Positions 15,328 through 54,278 of a DNA stretch of 64,000 nucleotides are shown one piece after another (the stretch's first letter is position 1; every line of letters starts with the position of its first letter). The translations under genes and the position numbers were made by a program. The notes under the pieces are model-generated. The model saw nothing but the letters and a program-made list of their open reading frames with translations, was not told the origin of the DNA and did not search any database. The stretch comes from Octopus bimaculoides (taxonomy: Eukaryota), in the NCBI RefSeq assembly GCF_001194135.2, contig NC_068993.1, positions 34,724,058 to 34,788,057 on the forward strand, written 5' to 3'.

Positions 15328-15855
15328 GCTAATTTGAGATATCATTTACCATTTCAAACTTTAGATCAAGGATAATTTCAATTAAGATCTACCAAACAGT
15401 CATTCATTTAACAATCTTTTTCCTGTCTTGTGATAATTTAAAGAGATGGACTGGGTTGTTTCATGTTAAGTGTCACAAATATAGACACAACGAAGCACTT
15501 CGTGACTATACTAACAATTTAGTCCCCACGGCCATAATTTTTGTGGAAATGCTTTGGCTATTATTGAGCAGCTGAAATATTGGTTTCAAATTTTGGTACA
15601 AGGTCAGAAATTCCGGGGAACGGACTAAGTCGATTAGACTGAACCTAGTGCTCAACTGGTTCTTATTTTCTCGACCTCGAAAGGTAAGTCGACTTCGGCG
15701 GAAGTTGAACTTAGAAGGTAAAGATGGACGAATTGTCGCTAATCATTTTGCTAACGATTCTGCCAGCTCGTCGCCTTGTGGAGCTGGAATATTGATGTAA
15801 TGACTGTGCCTTCACCTCATGTTTGCGTATGACAGAGAGAGAGGGAGAGAGAGAC

Positions 15856-16715: not shown

Positions 16716-17351
16716 TACTGGTACATTAGTAAAAGTTATTTCTTTTACTCTTCCTCTCTCTCTCCCTCTTTCTTTCTTTCTTTCTCTTTCTTCCTCTCTT
16801 TCTCTCTCTCTCTTAGGACTTATATCATTTTCGCTTTAATAAAACTATTAGATACCCCAATATGATGGTCATGTATAACTGGACTTATATACAGCTAGGC
16901 ATCTTGCCACATTCCATTGTTCGATGTGTCAGCTATGATTCTGAGTTAATGAGTTGATATGATCTGTTATGTCAGCTGTTAGAAATACAGTTTTCTATAG
17001 TCAAAAAGGAGCCACGACGTGATTACACTACTTATTAGAAAAACAAACTCCATTAACTTACACTCTTGAAGAGAAACATCATTTTTTTGTTATTTTACTG
17101 AAGTGGAAATATAACAGGGTTTAAAAAGAAAGGCAAGAATAAAACTTAACAAATAATCCACCTGAGAAGTGCCAAGTAAACCTCAACGGTTTATAATAAC
17201 AGTATCGGAAACGAATTCATTTCATAAATTACAACATAAAATTGAATAAAGTTAGAGTATGAGCATTGTAAAAGCAGAAAAACAAACAAAAAATTAGGCA
17301 TTTTAGTAATTGATGAAAAATATGTCTTAATTCTTCCTAGTATAATAATAG

Positions 17352-17515
17352 TGGTTTCAATTTTGGCACAAAGTTAGCAATATTAGAGGAAGCAGTAAGA
17401 TGGTATTATTGACCCCAGGTGCTCCGCTGGTATTTATTTTAGAGACCCAGAAAAGATGAAAAGCAAAGTCGACCTCGGTGACATTTGAACTCAGAACGTA
17501 AAAACGGGCAAAAGG
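17352..17515 (-). mobile_element. SINE family A, 5' truncated
   Basis: aagcaaagtcgacctcggtgacatttgaactcagaacgtaaa. Confidence 0.8.
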
Positions 17516-17546
17516 CCTAATAATAATACTGATAATAATAATAATA

Positions 17547-19372
17547 CTTTATTAGCCACCAGGGCCGAACACAAAGCATAGAGGACGATACACAGACGAG
17601 GGACACTGAGATTAAACGTGTAAACAGCTAACAAACACAACGATTAACAAAGAGATTAAATCAACAACATGCCTCCCCAGTAGTGGGGGGGATTCCACTG
17701 TAAGGTGACCAAAGAGACCTCACGCGCTTTGGACCCCCTAACACCGAAGGCTCCTCAGGAAGGCACCATCTCCTCCCTCTTCCGTCCGGCCTTCAGGCAC
17801 ACACTTAGAGTAGGCCCATTCACGCGGGCCGTTCTTGCCATATTCACCCACTTACTGAGTGACAGTACATCCCACTCCAACAGCAATTTCCTTTTCAGTT
17901 GGAACATGAAAAAGTCAATGAGGCCTTGGCCAAAGACGAAGGTACCTGTCTTCAACCTTTCAATTCCGTCAACCACACAATTTATTTTACCATAGCTACT
18001 AAAGAAAAATTGCCCTCCCCTCCTGGCCAAAGGAAGGAGGCAGAGCGATCTTCACAATGGACTCGGACAATAGCCGGATCCATCCTACACGTGACATTAA
18101 CTGTTCTTCAAAGCTCCACAAGTCAGCAATGCGCTGACACTATACGAGAGCATACAGAACGGTTTCATCGCTCGACGTGCATCTCGGATAAGCCCGAGTG
18201 ACTGCACACCCATGCCTGTAGAGCTTATCTCGATCCGTCAGCACTTCACGGTAGCACTGTCAGGCCAGGGATTTCTGGAAGTTCCCGGACGAAAGTCCTC
18301 CGGAAGAGAACAGCCAGTTGATCCCCATCTCCGACGCCCAGGTCCTCTCCGAACACGTCGTCACTCTTGCCTTCCACTAATCCCCTATAAAACTCCATGG
18401 TGGAACGTCCACCGACCGCATTGTCCGACAGGCCAAGGGTGGTGAGCGCTTGGAGACACTCTAGGTGCCAAGCGCCCCGCCTCAGTCCACGCCTGATCCA
18501 GGACTGTAGCTCCGCCAACGGGACGAGCTACGAAAAAGCGCATTCAATAAACGGCGACCACACCCACTCACCGTTAAGGTATCGCTGGAGATGTCGCAGC
18601 CTCAGCGCATGTCTGCGTATCCTCAGCCACGGCATGCCCAGTCTTCCATGCAATGTGTGCTGACAGCAAATGACCCTCTGACAAGTGGTACCTGTTCCGT
18701 CTACAAGAAGCGAAAGAGCAAACACACCAGCACGTTCAGCCACGAAATAGGACAAGGAATGACAGTCAGACGGTAGTATATGACAGATGAGATGTACGCA
18801 TTCGCCACCTGCACCTGACCTTTCAGGGACAGCTTCTACTCGACCCGTTTCTGGGTGAAACTGGCCGCCCTATCTGTCACTTCACAGCAGTTATTGTCCA
18901 CTTAGAGATCCGGACCGAACCAGATCCCGAGCAACTTAACAGGTCCTGCCGACCAGCGCCCCACCACGCTGTCACTTGGCATGGGTCACTCTTTCCAGAT
19001 GCTGAGCTGCAGGCCCACTGATCTTTTCTGGTTGATCATTGCTCCTGTCACCGCTTCTTATTCCCTTGGGGTTGTGCCGACCATCTCGATTTCCGAGATG
19101 TCCGATATTGTCACAGTGACGTCGTCCGCATACGCTGACACGAATTCCGCATCCCAGTTCACGCGGGATAACCCTCGAAACTTCCAGCCTCCGCAGTAAT
19201 GACTCGAGTGCCAGTACGTAAAAAAAAGGGGTGAGAGTAGGCATCCTTGACGGACTGAAAGTGCGATACTAAACGATACCGAGAGGTGGCCATTTACTTT
19301 GACCAGCGAACAGATGTCGCTGTACATTGCAATGATCCAGCCTCTGAAAACGGGACCGAAATCAGCCCCAAA
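17547..19372 (-). mobile_element. L1-Tx1 clade LINE, 5'-truncated, with RT C-terminal half, ORF2 C-terminus, 3' UTR, AATAAA and (TAT)n tail
   Basis: SVRQGCLLSPL, VSAYADDVTV, KLLGIWFGP, YRLTVIPCP, GRLGMPWL; 3' end gtggctaataaag-tattattatt; frameshifted. Confidence 0.92.
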
Positions 19373-19585
19373 ATGGGACTTTGGTTAACAAACGTCAGCA
19401 CCCACCCCCCTTCCCACACACCTCCAGCATGGCAGCTGGCTTACAAAACGATTTAAATAACAAGATACAGTATAGAACCTTTGAAACAGGTGAATTAGTC
19501 ATAAACTTACAGCGCTCCAGAAGCACACTTCCAGCCAGGCCACAATCATCTGGGATATGCCGGTTCAAACTAGCAAAGAAATAAA

Positions 19586-20222: not shown

Positions 20223-20680
20223 TTCTTTCTTTATTGATCACAAGGTCTGTAAAACGTCTAGGCTAATACAAAGAGAAAGAAAAGTGGGAATTTACATAGA
20301 AACGTATGAACAATAAATGCAATAACAATTTACAAAAAGAAATATTGGCAAACAAAATCTCTAATAGGGGTTAAATTGCTGCATTTGGACAACCAAGGAA
20401 CCCCACAGATCCCGGGCCACCCTTCTCATCAGGTGCACCATGGCATGTGCTCGTCTCTCTTCCGTCTTCATCAGCCTGCAGGCATCAGCTTAGAGTAGAC
20501 ACACTCCCTCGAGTCATACTCGCCTCACGCTTTCCTTTTCAAATAAAATTTTTAAAAGTCAGTGAGCCTTGGCCGAAGTGGAAAGTGTTTGTCTTCAACC
20601 CTTTCAGACTCGTTCACCACACAACCTATTTCGCCATAGCAACCAGGAAGAGGAATATTGCATGCCTTTACCGACCAAAT
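20212..20680 (-). mobile_element. L1-Tx1 LINE extreme 3' fragment
   Basis: LFLVAMAK.VVW..SLKGLKTNTF..GQG parallels 17750-18030; ends ccttgtgatcaataaagaaagaattattatt. Confidence 0.8.
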
Positions 20681-22789
20681 AACAATAATGGGCTCAAATT
20701 TATCTAATAAAATATCTTAACTCTTTTACCATTAGAGTAATTGTTTAGATTTTGTCACCTTGATGAAATTTTACATTGGCCATTATTGTTTGTATCAAAG
20801 CTTCAATCAAAGAAAGGCAGTGAATTTTTTTAATCTCAATTAACAAAATTATTCAAAAATGTGCGTACATAGACTGGTATTTGTAAATGGATGCATCCAT
20901 TTGTACCATTGATCGTGCTCTTTTCCATGAATGAACGTACCAATTTGTATGAATAGACGTACACATTTGCGTACACATTTGTGGTATGCAGCAGGTGGAT
21001 GTTCACAAAGAAGGGTAGTAGAAAAAGAGAAGTTCGACCTTGTAATATGACACTTTATTCATAAACGATAGATCATTTGCAATGCGTTGCTAAATGTGAG
21101 ATTTTTCTTTAATCCGAGAAAGCTTCTAGTGAATTATTTATGGGTGCTTTGAATTTCTAATGAATTATTTATAAGCTCTGTGAATTTCCCTCTTTGAACT
21201 TGTTTACTTCTTTGGTTTCCTACCTAAAGAATGAAAGAGGAAAACCACGGAGTTAAAAAATATGTACAGTACGCATGTTTTAAACATGCGACAAAGAATT
21301 TAATGTCTCTGTCCTTGACAGCTTTAAGGGCAAGAAATATACGTTTGTATTAACAATATCAGAAATAGAGTAAAATGCACGAGTAAAATATAGTCCTCAG
21401 TCGACACAGTGAAACAATAGGCATAATGGCTATGGCCAAAAAGAGCTGACGTAAGGCAGAACAAAAACAACAAAAAGAGTTGTCTGAGACTATGATTATT
21501 ATTACATTGAATAAATGTTTGCGAATATTAGATTCTATTTAAGTTTAAATAATAGGATACATGACTCCAATATTATGCATTTAAGCTAAACGACTGCCAA
21601 AATAGTTTGATTGCCTCACGTTAGTGATACTACGTTTACATATACCCTTCAGAGAACATCAACATAGTGGTTTGACTTAGTGTAACTAACATCCAAATCT
21701 CCTCCAAACCACACCCAAGCATCAGAAAAAAGAAATAATGCGGAAAATAAATAAATCATTCCAAATAAAACCACAACGACCCCAGTTTTATTCTAATGTT
21801 TTACTTTATCAACCCTGAGAAAATGAAAGCAAAGCTGATCTCGCATGATTTCATCTCAGAACTTATACAGCAAGGTCAGACTCAAAGCATTTCGTCTGAC
21901 TCTCTAACATTTCCACCAATCCATCCCAGTGGACATATTGGATTACGTAGTCCTAGATATACTCTCTCTCTCTCTTTCTGTCTGTCTGAAGGTCTCTTCC
22001 TCCCTCTCTTTCTCTCTCTATCTCTCTCTGTGACCACAAGATAATATGGTCATGCCTGGATTATCTTTGATTATAGATCTGCTCATTCGGGATTGATTTA
22101 GTGATAAATACCAACAAAAGCAACAATGTGCTTCGTGGAGCAAACAACTTTTTCATTAGAAACTCTTAACCACATTTGAAATAGGAATCGCCTGTTTAAA
22201 ATCTCGAAATCTAATTATAGGAATCTCGTAATACAATCATTGTAGCTAGAATGCCATAATCACATAGGTTAGAGAAAGTGATTCTTCATAGTCCTTTTGA
22301 ACCATGGGAGGAGCGAAATCATTCAACTTTAACACAAAACAAACTTGCTAGCTACTAACCCCATCAAATAAGAATGCAAGAATTGAGTTTCCAGTATAAT
22401 ATCTGTAGTATCTATATTGGTTTGTTACGAATATAAACGTTAGTTAGAACACCTATTTATAACCAGTACCTTCATATTAGATATCATTAGTAATTTTGGG
22501 GGAGTTATTGATTATTCAAAATTTACTCAACTCACAGTGTCATGCAGATTATAGAAAAGCTATTTATAAACAATCATGTCTATAAATACTCAAAATCTAC
22601 CCATTCACTCACTCACCTTCAATATAATTCTCTTCCTCCTGCTTTCACTCTCTCTCTCTTTCTTTCTCTTTCTCACCACTCTCTCTATCTTTCTCTGTCA
22701 TTCTTTTTCTGCTTTATTTCTCTCACACCAATATACACACAATCCTGTACACATTAATCTTCAAGCATAAATACAAATACGTACAAACA

Positions 22790-38884: not shown

Positions 38885-39590
38885 TCGCTGAGGTTGACTT
38901 TGCTTTTCATCCGTCAGGGGTTGAAAAAAAAAGTACCAATCAAGCACTGGGATCGATGTAATGGACTAGTACCCTTCCACAAAATCTGAGGTCCTGTACC
39001 TATAATAGAAAGGATTGTTGTTACTATTATTACTATGCAGAGACCTGGCAGAATCGTTAACATGCTAAAGGCAGCGAGCTGGCAGAAATGTTAGCACGCT
39101 GAGCGAAATGTTTAGCAATATTTTGTCTGCTGTTACGTTCTGAGTTCAATTCCGCCGAGGTCGACTTTGCCTTTCATCCTTTCGGGGTCGATAAATAAAG
39201 TACCAGTTACGCACTAGGGTCGATGTAATCGACTTAATCCCTTTGCATGTCCCTATTTGTCCCCACTATGTTTAGCCCCTTGTGGGCAATAAAGAAATAA
39301 GAAACGTTAGCTTAGCGATATTTCGTCTGTCTTTACGTTCTGAGTTCAAATGTCCTTTATCCTTTCGGGTGTCGATACATTAAGTACCAGTTGCGTACTG
39401 GGGTCGATCTAATCGACTGGCTCCCTCCCCAAACATTTCGGGCCTTGTGCCTAGAGGAGAAAAGAATCGTTAACATGCTGGACAAAGTACTCAGTGGCAC
39501 GTCTTCTGGATTTATGTTCTGAGTTCAAATTCTGCTGAGGTCAACTTTGCCTTCCATCCTTTCAGGGTCGATATAATAAGTACCTTTTAA
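38885..39590 (+). mobile_element. Array of tandem/nested SINE family A copies (tail 1 and tail 2 types)
   Basis: Copies at 38885-39015, 39067-39300 (tail 2), 39301-39464 (tail 1) and an outer copy 39040-39066 + 39463-39590; 17-bp duplication agaatcgttaacatgct at 39050-39066 and 39463-39479. Confidence 0.85.
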
Positions 39591-39839
39591 GCGAATGTAA
39601 TCCTGAGTTTATTCTTAATGTTTCGAAAGTTAACTCCTTTCCTCCGCCAAAGTTGCTAATAATTGCCCTTCTCTAAGAAGAAAAATGTAATGAATTTAGC
39701 ATATAATATATACGGCATTCAGTTCACTCCCGATTTTGCTTCTCAAAATTCATGCTACAGTCATTTTTGAGTTATTTTATTTTAGTCTTCTTTCAGCTAG
39801 AATTTGGATGCAGAAACATATCACATACACGCCCCCACG

Positions 39840-46569: not shown

Positions 46570-46778
46570 CTTTTCTACTCTAGGCATAAGGTCCGAAATT
46601 TTGGGGGAGGGCTCAAGTCGATTAGATCGACCTCAGTACGCAACTGGTAGTTAATTTATCGACCCCAAAAGGATAAAAGGCAAAGCCAACCTCAGTGGCA
46701 TTTGAACGTAAAGACAAACGAAATACCTCTAAGCATTTCGCCCGGCGTTCTAACGTTTCTGCCACCGCACCGCCAAGC
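46570..46778 (-). mobile_element. SINE family A (tail 1), full length
   Basis: cttttctactctaggcataaggtccgaaatt...aagcatttcgcccggcgttctaacgtttctgcca. Confidence 0.9.
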
Positions 46779-46899
46779 TAAATAATAACAACAACTAGAA
46801 TGTGAAAGTTAAATAACGTAATTTGTTTAAATTCACATAGGTACAGGTAACTTCTGAAATTACACATACACGCACATACATATACATACATACGTACGA

Positions 46900-49205
46900 G
46901 GGATTAACAGCATCGAATGCTTTGCTCAAATCAACACAGCAGTAGTATAGAGCAAGATTCTGTTCAATGCACTTTTCTTGTAATTGTCTGATAGTAAAGA
47001 TACAATCAGCTGTGCCCCTGGAGGAATGAAAACCACACTGAGACTCAGACACTATATTTGGAACTATGAAGGTATTTAAACGTTCTAACAAAATGCGGGC
47101 AAGTGCCTTTCCAACTACAGACAAAAGCGAAATACCACGAAAATGACCACACAGATCCTTTGGCTCCGATTTATACAAGAAAGCTAAAATGGCATCAAAC
47201 TCAATCTTGAGGCACTTTCTCAGTTCTCCAACAGTAACAAATTAATATATTTAAGAGTTCAAATATTTTGTCACCCCTATATTTCAAAACTTCTGCACAG
47301 ATTCCATCAGACCCTGGAGACTTATTGCTATTCAACTTATTCACAGCTAAATAAATGTCATTTAGAGTTGGTTCAAATGTCATCTTTTCTATAACTGGAA
47401 AGTGATCGATTTTTTCTATCGCTCTCATGTCAGTGGATGATGGTCTTTTCAAAAGTGCAGAAAAATGTTCTACCCAGCGCTTGTGAAAAGAAGCAGTGGC
47501 AGTCAGAAGCAAACGTCTATTTGCTGTTGTCGCTGGAGCTATTAAAGAAGATTTGGGGCCATATTCCTCCTTAACATAAGAGTATCAGCTGCTTCACGTC
47601 CCCCTTTTGCTCTATCATTCGACTATTCCTGTTTAATTTTCCTTAGAGCAGTCTGCACTTTCCTTTTCAGCTTTTGTTTGACTTGGGGTTCAAGGACTGA
47701 GAAAGAAGTGCATTGCCTAAGTTCTGTTTTTCTAAAAGTAGATCAAGAATTTTTGCTGATCTACCTGAGAACCAGTCACTGGACGTATGTGATTTAAATC
47801 CCACTGGCGAACTTGCAGCCTGAAATACTTTTGTTTTGAACTCTTCCCATAGATTGTTTGGGTCAAGTCTGATACTTTCTATTGCATATTGGAATCTTTG
47901 AATGTTGATTGATAATTTAAAGCTTGCAACATTTACCCTTTTGGATACCTTAGGACCAGACTGTCGATTTTCAGGCATTATCGAAAAATCTTTTTTCCAC
48001 GCAGTAGACGATGGTTAGTCCGGCTCTCTGCTCCTCTCATGGCCCGAATGGTAGAAACGTCTTTCATATCACGTCTTCTGATCGGAATATAATCTATGAG
48101 ATGCAAGGCTTAGATCTTGGGTGCATCCAGGTGGTTTTATATTTATTTTTCTGCTTAAACAGTGTTAAACAGATTATTCTCAGTATAAAACGTCAAAAGA
48201 GCTACTCCGTTTTTATTACATTTTCCAATCTCATGTCGACCTAAAACAGGCCATGAAACGTAGTCCTTTCCAACTCTTGCATTGACACCTCCGAATATGA
48301 CCAGCATGTCAGAAATTGGTACTTTCCTCAATAATTGTGCTATATCATCATAAAACTGTCCTACAGTTTCATCAGAATGGGACATTCTTGGTGCATAAAT
48401 ACCGACAACGGTAAGAAACCTACATTTTGGTAGTTTACTACGGCATGACATGGTTCGTTCAGATATATCACTAGGAAGCACTGCAATGGAGGATACTAAT
48501 GTATTCTTGAGAGAAAACGCAATACCAGATTCTCTACGCTGACCCTTAGGTATGCCTCTCTAAAAGATAGTGTATCCATAAGTAGGTTCATTTACTTGAC
48601 CATCACCAGAGAGACGAGTTTCGGAGAGCGCATCTATATCAAGGGAATATTTCATAAGCTCACATGCAATAAGTGCAGTACGCCTTTTTGGCCTCTTGTT
48701 GAAATTATCATCAAGAAGTGTGCGCACATTCGAACAGCCAAAATTCAAAGGATGTCTATTTTTACTTCTTGAAGATTGTTTGACTACAGTGGCAGGATGA
48801 CGTCTGGACCAAGTCTCTGATATACTGGGACAAATGCCGAGCCAGACCTGTTCCCCTGACGTTCCCAACCCTTTTTCTTTTTTTTTTTATTTGCTATTTA
48901 CTGAATCTGTTTGAGACACTCTAGAGTAAGTTACAAGTGCATTTTTAGGTTTCTGCCAACCAACCAATCCAATGATTTTACTAAGACTTGGTGTACAGGA
49001 ATTATCTGTGCAGATGAATAATTTTCAGTGGGTGTAGCTTGCACTGCAATACCCCACCTATTGGCCCAAGAAGACTTTCGACGGTGTGACATGAAAATTG
49101 ACAAAACCAGGAACTTCCAAGGCCTCAGGTTTTATTTCGGAGATTTTCTTCTCCTAGGTAGATTACCAACAAGGGTTAAAGGGCTGCTACCTGCCCATAG
49201 GGTAA
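46900..49205 (-). mobile_element. RTE-BovB clade LINE relic: 5' UTR, APE endonuclease, RT domains 0-3; 3' truncated
   Basis: CSNVRTLLD..RPKRRTALIACEL..DIDALSETRL; KSPGSDGICAE; RGISLLSVVGKALARIL; ESQCGF..RGTADCIFTIRQLQEKC; VDLSKAFDAV, then runs into a microsatellite. The 5' UTR motif cctaggagaag...ctccga.ataaaacc is shared with the 24085 copy. Confidence 0.92.
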
Positions 49206-51837: not shown

Positions 51838-53264
51838 AGTCACTTCTTTTATCATGTCATGGATCTTGTCGGAGCGAGTATAATGTTTAGAATGTAAAAG
51901 TGAGTAATTAAAGATTATAGACGAATTTTGAAATCCATTAAACAAGCTTCTTCAAAACTATTTCAACTTTAGTTGCGGTATGGTTGCGTTGAATTTAAAA
52001 TAATAAGACTCAAGAAATCAATTTCCCTACCAGACAGTAATTATTTTCTTTTGATAAAGAAGACATTTATAAGTGCGAGACGGACGGTTTCCATACGCTT
52101 CCAACACAGAATGAATATCATAGTAGCGTTTATCAACAACAGATCAAAACTTACTTATTCAATGATTATGTTTCAGAATATTGCTGCACTTGAACAGCTC
52201 AACATGACCTTAGTTTAATTTTCATCATACCTCTGTTTTTCCTTTCTTTTTTTCAATTCTTCCCGATTTCATTATTCAGTATAGCAAATAAGTATATATT
52301 ACTATATAAATATTTCTGTGAATGAGCGGCCTTTAACAAAGTTAATTACTTTACCTTTCCTCATCAGAATTATACATCATAACATGATTGAAAAAATGTC
52401 ATTTGTGACAGCTATAGTTTTCTGAGGTCTTTTGAAACGTAAATGAAATGCTGACTGGAATGGAAATCAGATTTGTGATCATTATAGAAGTATGGACATC
52501 ATGATCAAAAATACAAATACATTATTGAGCTTTATGTGGATGATCGTGATATTCCTTGATACGAATATGTAAGTTGTTTTAATAGCATAGTCTAACTGTA
52601 GTCGGGTTCACTGATGTTTTATCTGCTACAGTACTGGACAATAACAAAGAAAGGGCTGCTTCGTTTCCCTTCAGACCTATTCTGTCTGTTTTATAGTCTG
52701 AGAATCCCCACTCTCAAAAAGCTGACTACGTTACACTGCAACAGAATCTTAAGTTTGACTAATGCTTCGTTGGTAAATCCTACAGCATTAATTTCGATCA
52801 ACAGAAAAAACTTACAAACCCTAAGTGTGATACTCTGAGGATGTATTCATTGTCGCCGCCCTGTTAACCTCTGGGAAAGACTAAAGTTAGGTCTCAGGTT
52901 ACTGGAGTGCAGATATATCTGTGACAGATGCCGATCTTTATTCAATTAAAACTACTCAATTTTTTGAGGAATGTACTGTCGACGTTAATTTAACCAGGAA
53001 AAAAACGAATATGCTTAACTGTTTCCAGGATTAGTACAAAGGTATATATTTAGTGTGCCGTCCTAAATAACACAGTCGAGATTTGAATGTAGAAATATAA
53101 AGGAACATAATTAAATACTAAAAGAGAGTATATCCTTCTGACTTTATTATGAACTAGCCTTATGAGAATCGCTCGTAGAGTAATTGATGTGTTTGGTAAA
53201 GTTACAGCAAAATACAGTGTTTGTGATTGCTGATTGAGAGATGAGCGTAATATTATTTTACTGA

Positions 53265-53440
53265 AGGGCGTCGAGCTGGCAGAATCGTTAACACACCGGG
53301 TGAAATACTTAGCGCATTTCGTCTGCCGTTACGTTGTGAGTTCAAACTCCGCACTGGGTTCTATGTAATCGACTTAAACCCTTTGTCTGCCCTTGTTTGT
53401 CCCCTCTATGTTTAGCCCCCTGTAGGCAATAAAGAAATAA
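53265..53440 (+). mobile_element. SINE family A with tail 2 and an internal deletion
   Basis: ggcgtcgagctggcagaatcgttaac...gagttcaaactccgc|actggg...atcgacttaaaccctttgtctgcccttgtttgtcccctctatgtttagccccctgtaggcaataaagaaataa. Confidence 0.85.
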
Positions 53441-54278
53441 ATATTATATTACTTTTTTTTATTAGTCATGAAATTCTTCATTCGTAAATCTAGACTTGCC
53501 CGGATTAGCACTTTCTATCAGCATAGTACTGTTTGTCTGTTGAGTCATTACATTCTAAAGAATCTCATTTTTTTCCTTACAGAGAAAAAAATATAGCGCC
53601 AGCACAACTATATATCGAACAACTACTCATCTTTTGTTTCTTACAGAGAAAAAAATAAACCACAACTATGCATATACTATGCAGAAGCACACACAAAAAC
53701 CGGGTAAATGCTTCGAACATATCCATGTATGTATAAATACATGCATACACACTTTCTTTTCTGGGTGTCAATAGAGAGACAAACGAACCCTGCCTAGCTC
53801 AATCGTTCATCTTACACATCACAGTTACATATCATGTTAGCTGATCCATCAGCCAACTCTATTTTGTGATTTATTATTATCTTGTTCTAAATTGCCGCTG
53901 AGTTGGTTAATTCTTAATAACATTTCTTATGTCACCGTTTAGGTTTCTGCTTTCTGGTTTAATATTACATCAAACTTCCAGTGTCTAGGTCAAGTGACTC
54001 GTTTTGTGCGTTCGCATATCTGTCTCTATAACTTTATGTTCTGATGCATCATATTCATGTTATGTGTCTCTTCTTTAAAACTACTTGTTCTTATGTCTTG
54101 ATTTTTTGCCTCACATGTAACTATAATTCCATTCCCGATTCGTTCGATTAATGAACCGTTTGACTGAGATACAATGACATTTGATATCAATCCCTGTTCA
54201 GCAGAATTATTGGCAGTTATTAAACAAATTTGCCCGAATTCTTGTCTGTTGCTTCGAATATTGTTTTAAGTAGCTATA

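Follow-up and report, generated by a model that had tools for sequence, protein, structure and literature searches.

A SINE family of Octopus bimaculoides probably shares its 3′ end, including a small covarying hairpin, with a LINE of the L1 superfamily

SINE A, a short repeat of Octopus bimaculoides, probably carries at its 3′ end a copy of the 3′ end of a LINE of the L1 superfamily, probably of the Tx1 group, and would be mobilised in trans by that LINE; from comparisons between sequences, this reading is given a probability of roughly three in four. Homology of the two termini, covariation in a short stem, L1-type protein domains in the LINE, enrichment of (ATT)n and one target-site duplication were observed directly. 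That a SINE and a LINE can have a tail in common has long been known (PMC3747384), and the octopod pair appears to be a real, stringent-type SINE/LINE pair with an L1-type partner, in a class that is already known; its main interest lies in the small covarying hairpin, which is reused across several SINE families. Unless another source is named, the coordinates refer to the window, a stretch of 64,000 nucleotides (contig NC_068993.1, positions 34,724,058 to 34,788,057, forward strand).

A self-search of the window, which is AT-rich (G+C 37%), returned about 19 copies of SINE A, a repeat of approximately 250 bp that is short, dispersed and multicopy and that, in the copy at 53264, is flanked by a target-site duplication. 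By eye, its head contains a B-box-like GAGTTCAAATTCC, an A-box-like GAGCTGGCAGAA and acceptor-like ends (GGCGG...CCGCC); neither ARAGORN nor Rfam returned a tRNA match for this head. The body bears at least three types of tail (tails 1, 2 and 3), and tail 2 is present in only two of the approximately 19 copies of the window, which run beyond body position ~181 into a tail of 68 nt. One of these copies (39063–39300, plus strand; body 39063–39232, with the tRNA-like head) lies within a tandem SINE A cluster (38886–39600), and its tail, at 39233–39300, is composed of 42 pyrimidine-rich nt, a hairpin GCCC-cttgt-GGGC (39275–39287) and then AATAAAGAAATAA; the other (53264–53440, plus strand) has an internal deletion, and the hairpin of its tail, at 53373–53440, reads GCCC-cctgt-AGGC (53415–53427), with one pair broken. 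Two further copies of SINE A with tail 2 are found in a 110-kb stretch of O. bimaculoides (L001). The coordinates of both tails had been correctly given in an earlier note on the window, together with a tail string that proves to be a hybrid of the two copies and matches neither: the copy at 39233 reads ...ccctttgcatgtccctatttgtccccactatg..., with 'ccactatg' and without 'cctctatg', and the copy at 53373 reads cttaaaccc...ccccctgtaggc, with 'ttaaac' and 'cctgtagg' and without 'ttaatc' and 'ttgtgg'. The two LINE 3′ ends quoted there are exact.

The LINE family occurs in the window as fragments on the minus strand. The copy at 17547–19420 is 5′-truncated and decayed; a single frame interrupted by stops leads from the RT palm (YADD) through a CCHC zinc knuckle to the ORF2 C-terminus, Pfam detects RVT_1 weakly, and the 3′ UTR, about 200 nt long, contains a hairpin GGCC-ctggt-GGCT (17566–17554) ahead of the element terminus ...AATAAAG. 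Next to it lie an (ATT)n-like 3′ repeat (17518–17546, minus strand) and then a 5′-truncated SINE A copy (17513–17347). A second element of the same family is a short 3′ fragment (20223–20703, minus strand) with a degraded hairpin AGAC-cttgt-GATC (20248–20236) and the terminus AATAAAGAAAGAA followed by (ATT)3, and a third (2226–3318, minus strand) comprises the 5′ and middle parts of ORF2, with an internal deletion and no 3′ end. Homologues of the window ORF2, among them one from Argonauta hians, carry RVT_1 (PF00078) and zf-RVT (PF13966), and the full-length ones also an APE endonuclease domain, Exo_endo_phos (PF03372); in the Argonauta copy (L002), ORF2 is preceded by an ORF1 (476 aa) that contains a CCHC knuckle. 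For P0070, a full-length homologue approximately 42% identical to P0003, the best solved relative is human L1 ORF2p (E = 9e-69, aa 6–854), and the next family is R2 (E = 5e-16). Because of the predicted APE, RT and CCHC domains, and because a full-length homologue comes closest, among solved proteins, to human L1 ORF2p, the window LINE is assigned to the L1 superfamily. The name Tx1 or L1 stands on none of the protein database matches; within the superfamily, the LINE probably belongs to the Tx1 group, on the circumstantial basis of the site-specific insertion of its relatives, described below, and of the listing of L1-Tx1 in Octopus vulgaris, where it is the sole L1-type class among the recently active LINEs (PMC13282606).

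Seven LINE 3′ UTRs, from at least four sources, can be aligned without a break between the stop codon and a shared terminus ...GGCCCTTGTGGCYAATAAAG(AAATC)(ATT)n, and the last 30–35 nt of these ends align with Octopus tail 2 and with the tails of two Argonauta SINE families. In this terminal region common to the LINE and tail 2, a hairpin (4-bp stem, CTTGT loop) is followed by an A-rich end (AATAAAGAAAT) and then by (ATT)n. The similarity is significant in both directions. An nhmmer profile made from LINE ends only recovered all four Octopus copies of tail 2 (E = 3.6e-4, 4.1e-4, 1.6e-3 and 0.025) and the Argonauta SINE tails (E 3e-6 to 1e-4); its two weakest matches are copies of tail 1, and the first unrelated match did not come before E = 5.8. 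A profile made from SINE tails only recovered, in turn, the LINE ends of L002 (E = 7.4e-9), of L004 (E = 7.9e-7) and of the window at 17574–17544 (E = 1.5e-3). Octopus contributes about 175 kb and Argonauta 22 kb to the DNA sampled (about 205 kb in the profile searches), in which other LINE clades are barely represented. In a comparison of the tail-2 consensus with 12,652 genomic segments of 75 nt, all scores of 19 or more belonged to tail-2 copies, and the next best to the two LINE 3′ termini of the window; the null of this scoring was 7.3 ± 1.9, and the LINE ends scored 19–25.

The extent of this similarity is narrow. With profiles trimmed of AATAAAG and of everything 3′ of it, the cross-matches between LINE and SINE were not significant (E 0.04–1.3), and neither was the similarity between the LINE 3′ UTRs and the 42 nt that precede the hairpin of tail 2 in 18 pairwise shuffle tests, the lowest of which (Octopus versus LINE w1) gave p = 0.036 uncorrected. 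The motifs 'ttaatc' and 'cctctatg', which the earlier note had counted as shared, were ruled out as evidence of homology, given the lack of significant similarity in the 42 nt before the hairpin; its view that tail 2 and the LINE 3′ end are related is upheld for the terminal 30–35 nt, by the two-way profiles, the rank, the Argonauta termini and the covariation of the stem, and not for those upstream motifs. On these alignments, homology between LINE and SINE appears demonstrable for the terminal hairpin and the A-rich end only. No Octopus LINE subfamily with the exact version of tail 2 or tail 1 was found in the approximately 175 kb of Octopus DNA, and scans of a metagenome collection without octopus DNA for the tail motifs gave 0 matches and then 2 bacterial chance matches. 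The derivation of the tail from the LINEs of the window, also put forward in the earlier note, holds as to the family, whose 3′ terminus is the one shared, but not as to the copies, which are decayed, 5′-truncated relatives and not the donors themselves.

The hairpin was assessed on an ungapped alignment of 37 nt from 34 termini, which are related copies and represent few independent events. On this alignment, the module has a stem of 4 bp that closes a 5-nt loop (CTTGT, >90% conserved) and is followed by an A-rich end. The arms of the stem read GGCC with GGCC or GGCT in the LINE, GCCC with GGGC in tail 2, GGGC or AGGC with GCCT in tail 1, and TGGC with GCCA in tail 3. Compensatory double changes that preserve the pair affect three of the four stem pairs across the LINE and tails 1, 2 and 3, and 87.5% of the stem cells are paired, compared with 69.4 ± 2.6 after shuffling (0 of 500 shuffles reached the observed value) and with 17–46% when the partners were slid. 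RNAalifold, unaided, folds the same hairpin, although the 4-bp stem is weak, at about −3 kcal/mol. A longer outer helix of U-rich and A-rich strands around the hairpin appeared in five of six single-sequence folds and was rejected, being unsupported on the alignment. The covarying hairpin would thus be a conserved RNA structure of the shared tail, for which the evidence is good and not overwhelming, because the covariation events are few and the copies related.

Tails 1 and 3 contain the same hairpin module as tail 2. Tail 1 is exemplified on SINE A at 39412–39467 (plus strand; CCCTCCCCAAACATTTC, hairpin GGGC-cttgt-GCCT, then AGAGGAGAAAAG), with more copies ending near 9537 (plus strand) and near 961, 4863, 46569 and 58038 (minus strand), and tail 3 at 15576–15612 (minus strand; hairpin TGAC-cttgt-ACCA, then AAATTTGAAACC), with more copies near 4698–4745, 8421–8437 and 17347–17371 (minus strand). 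The LINE that matches tail 1, whose identification the earlier note had suggested as a check, is a related one: a profile made from Octopus tail 1 only recovered the 3′ UTR of a LINE with an ORF2 approximately 42% identical (L013/L014, from a eukaryote in ENA assembly ERZ21867824) at E = 5e-5, with 27 of 32 positions identical over the aligned stretch CCCTTCCCCCAAAACTCCAGGCCTTGTGCCTA, and every further match of this profile is a LINE end or a SINE tail. A third family in ERZ21867824 has the terminus ...AGGCCTTGTGCCAAATTTG, which resembles tail 3. One body with several tails implies that tail exchange took place, as the earlier note had supposed; and since the counterpart of tail 1 lies in the 3′ UTR of related LINEs, the swap would have been between subfamilies of one LINE lineage, from which SINE A apparently took its tail types, and not between clades. 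Tail 2 itself appears to predate the split of Octopus and Argonauta, because a profile made from Argonauta only finds Octopus tail 2 (E = 0.002–0.005).

In Argonauta, two different SINE families, one with the SINE A body and the other with a different short head, have tails that hardly differ from a LINE end, tgtgtcGGCCcttgtGGCTaataaagaaatctatt. At L002 12014–12290 and 12424–12655, the Argonauta LINE is followed by a second, 5′-truncated 3′ fragment of 230 bp from the same family, and the own terminus of the full copy in L002 is a variant with a 4-nt loop, AGCC-aggt-GGCT, and with AAGAAAG in place of AATAAAG. The second, very short SINE-like repeat of Argonauta, located at L002 215–330, 1946–2034, 5118–5207, 13880–13967 and 14228–14350 (minus strand), has a head with a B-box-like 'ggttcaatc' and the LINE-type tail also found in the SINE A-like family.

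In ERZ21867824, the related LINE P0184 (L015–L024), with about 42% ORF2 identity and a host G+C of ~50%, lies at one fixed 17-bp site in all 10 copies; at their 3′ junctions, near 5665, the terminus ...ACAAAGAAATAAAG is followed by TTAAGTTAACTCCAGCC..., or the copies form head-to-tail arrays with that 17-mer as spacer. The insertion of this LINE is site-specific, and target specificity of this kind is known for Tx1-group elements (PMC4494074). A tRNA-like SINE of ~140 nt from the same assembly (L019 5677–5820; single copy seen) ends in the hairpin CGGC-cttgt-GCCA, is flanked by a 15-bp duplication, TAAGTTAAYTCCAG, and occupies exactly the same target site as the neighbouring LINE.

The octopod elements are associated with a simple repeat. 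As stated in the earlier note, (ATT)n follows LINE and SINE A ends: it was found 3′ of the LINE ends w1, w2, L001 and L004 and of most SINE A ends, and one LINE with intact ORFs has >24 (ATT) units at its 3′ end. Upstream of the SINE heads, (ATT)n-like sequence reached the threshold in 8 of 30 anchors, against a background of 1.9%, and a stricter threshold in 4 of 30 (P = 7e-5). The copy of SINE A at 53264 is flanked by a target-site duplication of 14 bp, read from the sequence on the plus strand, with the 5′ copy AATATTATTTTACT at 53249–53262 and the 3′ copy AATATTATATTACT at 53440–53453 (combined form AATATTAT(T/A)TTACT). No (ATT)n was found at the 5′ junction of the LINE copy 17547–19420, and the octopod (ATT)n may be the insertion target, the own tail of the element, or both.

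SINE A copies also stand head to tail, with only (ATT)n-like remnants between them, at 38886–39600 (plus strand) and at L001 31591–32062 and 77965–78450, and it looks as if younger copies had used the 3′ repeats of older ones as insertion sites. Another SINE family (…ggcaccttgggcaagtgtcttctactatagcc…, CORE/Ceph-like) occurs directly 3′ of a tail-2 SINE copy at L001 53440–53519 (minus strand) and again in the window at ~1880–2000 (minus strand).

From these observations we infer recognition of the SINE RNA by the LINE protein and mobilisation in trans, and the same holds for the placement of the LINE in the Tx1 group. SINE A would be a non-autonomous retroposon of octopods. Its partner would be a LINE whose ORF1 bears a CCHC knuckle and whose ORF2 combines APE endonuclease, RT and a CCHC domain. 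The RNA module shared by the two would comprise the hairpin (4 bp, G+C, with a loop of the C(U/C)UGU type), an A-rich segment of 10–15 nt (AAUAAAGAAAU) and (AUU)n. By 'stringent' 3′ recognition, the ORF2 protein would pick out this module on the RNA of the LINE itself, and SINE RNA with the same module would serve as a template in trans. Its target-primed reverse transcription, at sites that are AT-rich or contain (ATT)n, would then leave duplications of the target site about 14 bp long. Tail 2 would be an ancient version of the module, older than the divergence of Octopus and Argonauta, and tails 1 and 3 would be versions from related LINE subfamilies.

Among the alternatives, the one that best withstands the evidence, although improbable, is that tail 2 has its true partner in another, unsampled LINE clade, and that the L1-type LINE merely has a short terminal box that is convergent or was exchanged. 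RTE, CR1 and Dong-R4 LINEs are abundant in Octopus genomes (PMC13282606, PMC8967140), the search extended over ~200 kb only, and no source was found for the 42 nt that precede the hairpin; nevertheless, nothing else in the sampled DNA matches the tails, and the module, which recurs in several independent SINE families of two or three hosts, is shared with one LINE lineage only. A reversal of direction, in which LINE copies would end in a SINE fragment inserted into their 3′ end or recombined with it, is very unlikely. SINEs do often insert in the (ATT)n tails of other elements, as does the SINE A fragment at 17513, right after a LINE, yet the seven LINE copies that align from stop codon to terminus do so without any SINE body, the Octopus LINE has a hairpin variant (GGCC/GGCY) unlike those of the Octopus SINEs, and the module is present on LINEs with intact ORFs. 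Chance or convergence between two pyrimidine-rich ends, each with a polyadenylation-like AATAAAG and an AT-rich microsatellite and without common origin, has the least to recommend it: the loss of significance without AATAAAG and the 3′ remainder, and the lack of significant similarity upstream of the hairpin, are what it would predict, but it is hard to reconcile with profile matches specific to LINE ends and SINE tails in both directions, none of them false in ~205 kb, with the LINE ends as the top non-self ranks among the 12,652 segments, with the near identity of LINE and SINE termini in Argonauta, with a covarying stem around a conserved loop, and with the recurrence of the module in LINE 3′ UTRs of the other host (ERZ21867824).

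Derivation of the SINE A tail from an L1-type LINE, the favored reading, has its closest precedents in maize (ZmSINE2/3 with LINE1-1_ZM) and Chlamydomonas (SINEX-3_CR with L1-1_CR), where the conserved 3′ end of an L1-clade LINE and a hairpin are also shared by a SINE; these pairs are the few known exceptions to the 'relaxed' poly(A) recognition by L1 (PMC3472496, PMC3747384). They belong to plants and green algae and have poly(A) ends, whereas the octopod pair is from an animal and ends in (ATT)n. The remark in the earlier note that sharing of 3′ ends is rarely reported for the L1 clade agrees with the literature, in which the pairs found were these two (PMC3472496). The eel pair UnaSINE1/UnaL2 (Kajikawa & Okada 2002), as it is presented in later papers (PMC3747384, PMC4494074), is alike in that the 3′ end of the SINE copies that of the LINE and in that a stem-loop stands just before the terminal repeats, (TGTAA)n in eel and (ATT)n in octopods; according to the same accounts, the eel partner belongs to the L2 clade, while that of the octopod pair, known from sequence alone, belongs to the L1 superfamily and has a stem of only 4 bp.

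The crocodilian SINEU/Tx1-Mar system (PMC4494074) resembles the octopod one in that a Tx1-group LINE was inferred to mobilise a SINE and in that an insertion preference is common to both elements. The link there is a shared target, the Mariner-N4 transposon, and here a shared 3′ module; moreover, no LINE source was found for the shared 3′ region of SINEU-1, and those SINEs have snRNA-derived heads and poly(A) tails (PMC4494074). Repeat-associated ends are also a property of the Tx1-group elements Kibi, with (TC)n, and Koshi, with (TTC)n (Kojima & Fujiwara 2004, as cited in PMC4494074), and the Drosophila I element ends in a trinucleotide-type repeat, (TAA)n (PMC3747384). As cited there, Kibi and Koshi target microsatellites, whereas the octopod (ATT)n may be either target or tail, one LINE 5′ junction being without it.

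SINEs make up ~12% of the Octopus vulgaris genome (PMC13282606); the papers on octopus repeats list L1-Tx1 and leave SINEs mostly 'unclassified', and none of those searched names a LINE partner for octopus SINEs (PMC13282606, PMC8967140). Linking a major SINE family with a LINE of L1/Tx1 type would account for what drives its amplification and for the clustering of its copies at (ATT)n, and an animal case with a small covarying hairpin bears on the choice of template by L1-type reverse transcriptases. More tentatively, and with belief and doubt leaning slightly to doubt, the data may be taken to reveal an animal L1/Tx1-type lineage with stringent 3′ recognition through a tiny hairpin (RGGC/GGCC stem, CUUGU loop) and an A-rich end, conserved from octopods to LINEs with ~42% ORF2 identity and captured by at least four independent SINE families; the families counted are SINE A of Octopus, in three tail versions, two SINEs of Argonauta and one of ERZ21867824. 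If true, this lineage would make it possible to test in an animal the proposal that the L1 clade ancestrally recognised its 3′ ends by their sequence.

Two further observations concern coding sequences. ORF2 of the window LINE family is found inside a protein from a metagenome-assembled genome labelled Herbaspirillum and inside an "AMP deaminase 2" gene model of O. bimaculoides (P0006, P0012), the former probably by contamination and the latter probably as a chimeric model. The other large ORFs of the window gave no Pfam match, except for one further RT fragment, at 46795–47710 (minus strand; RVT_1, E = 3e-13), which derives from a different, more distant LINE (23% identity to P0003) and has a SINE A copy (46608–46764) directly downstream.
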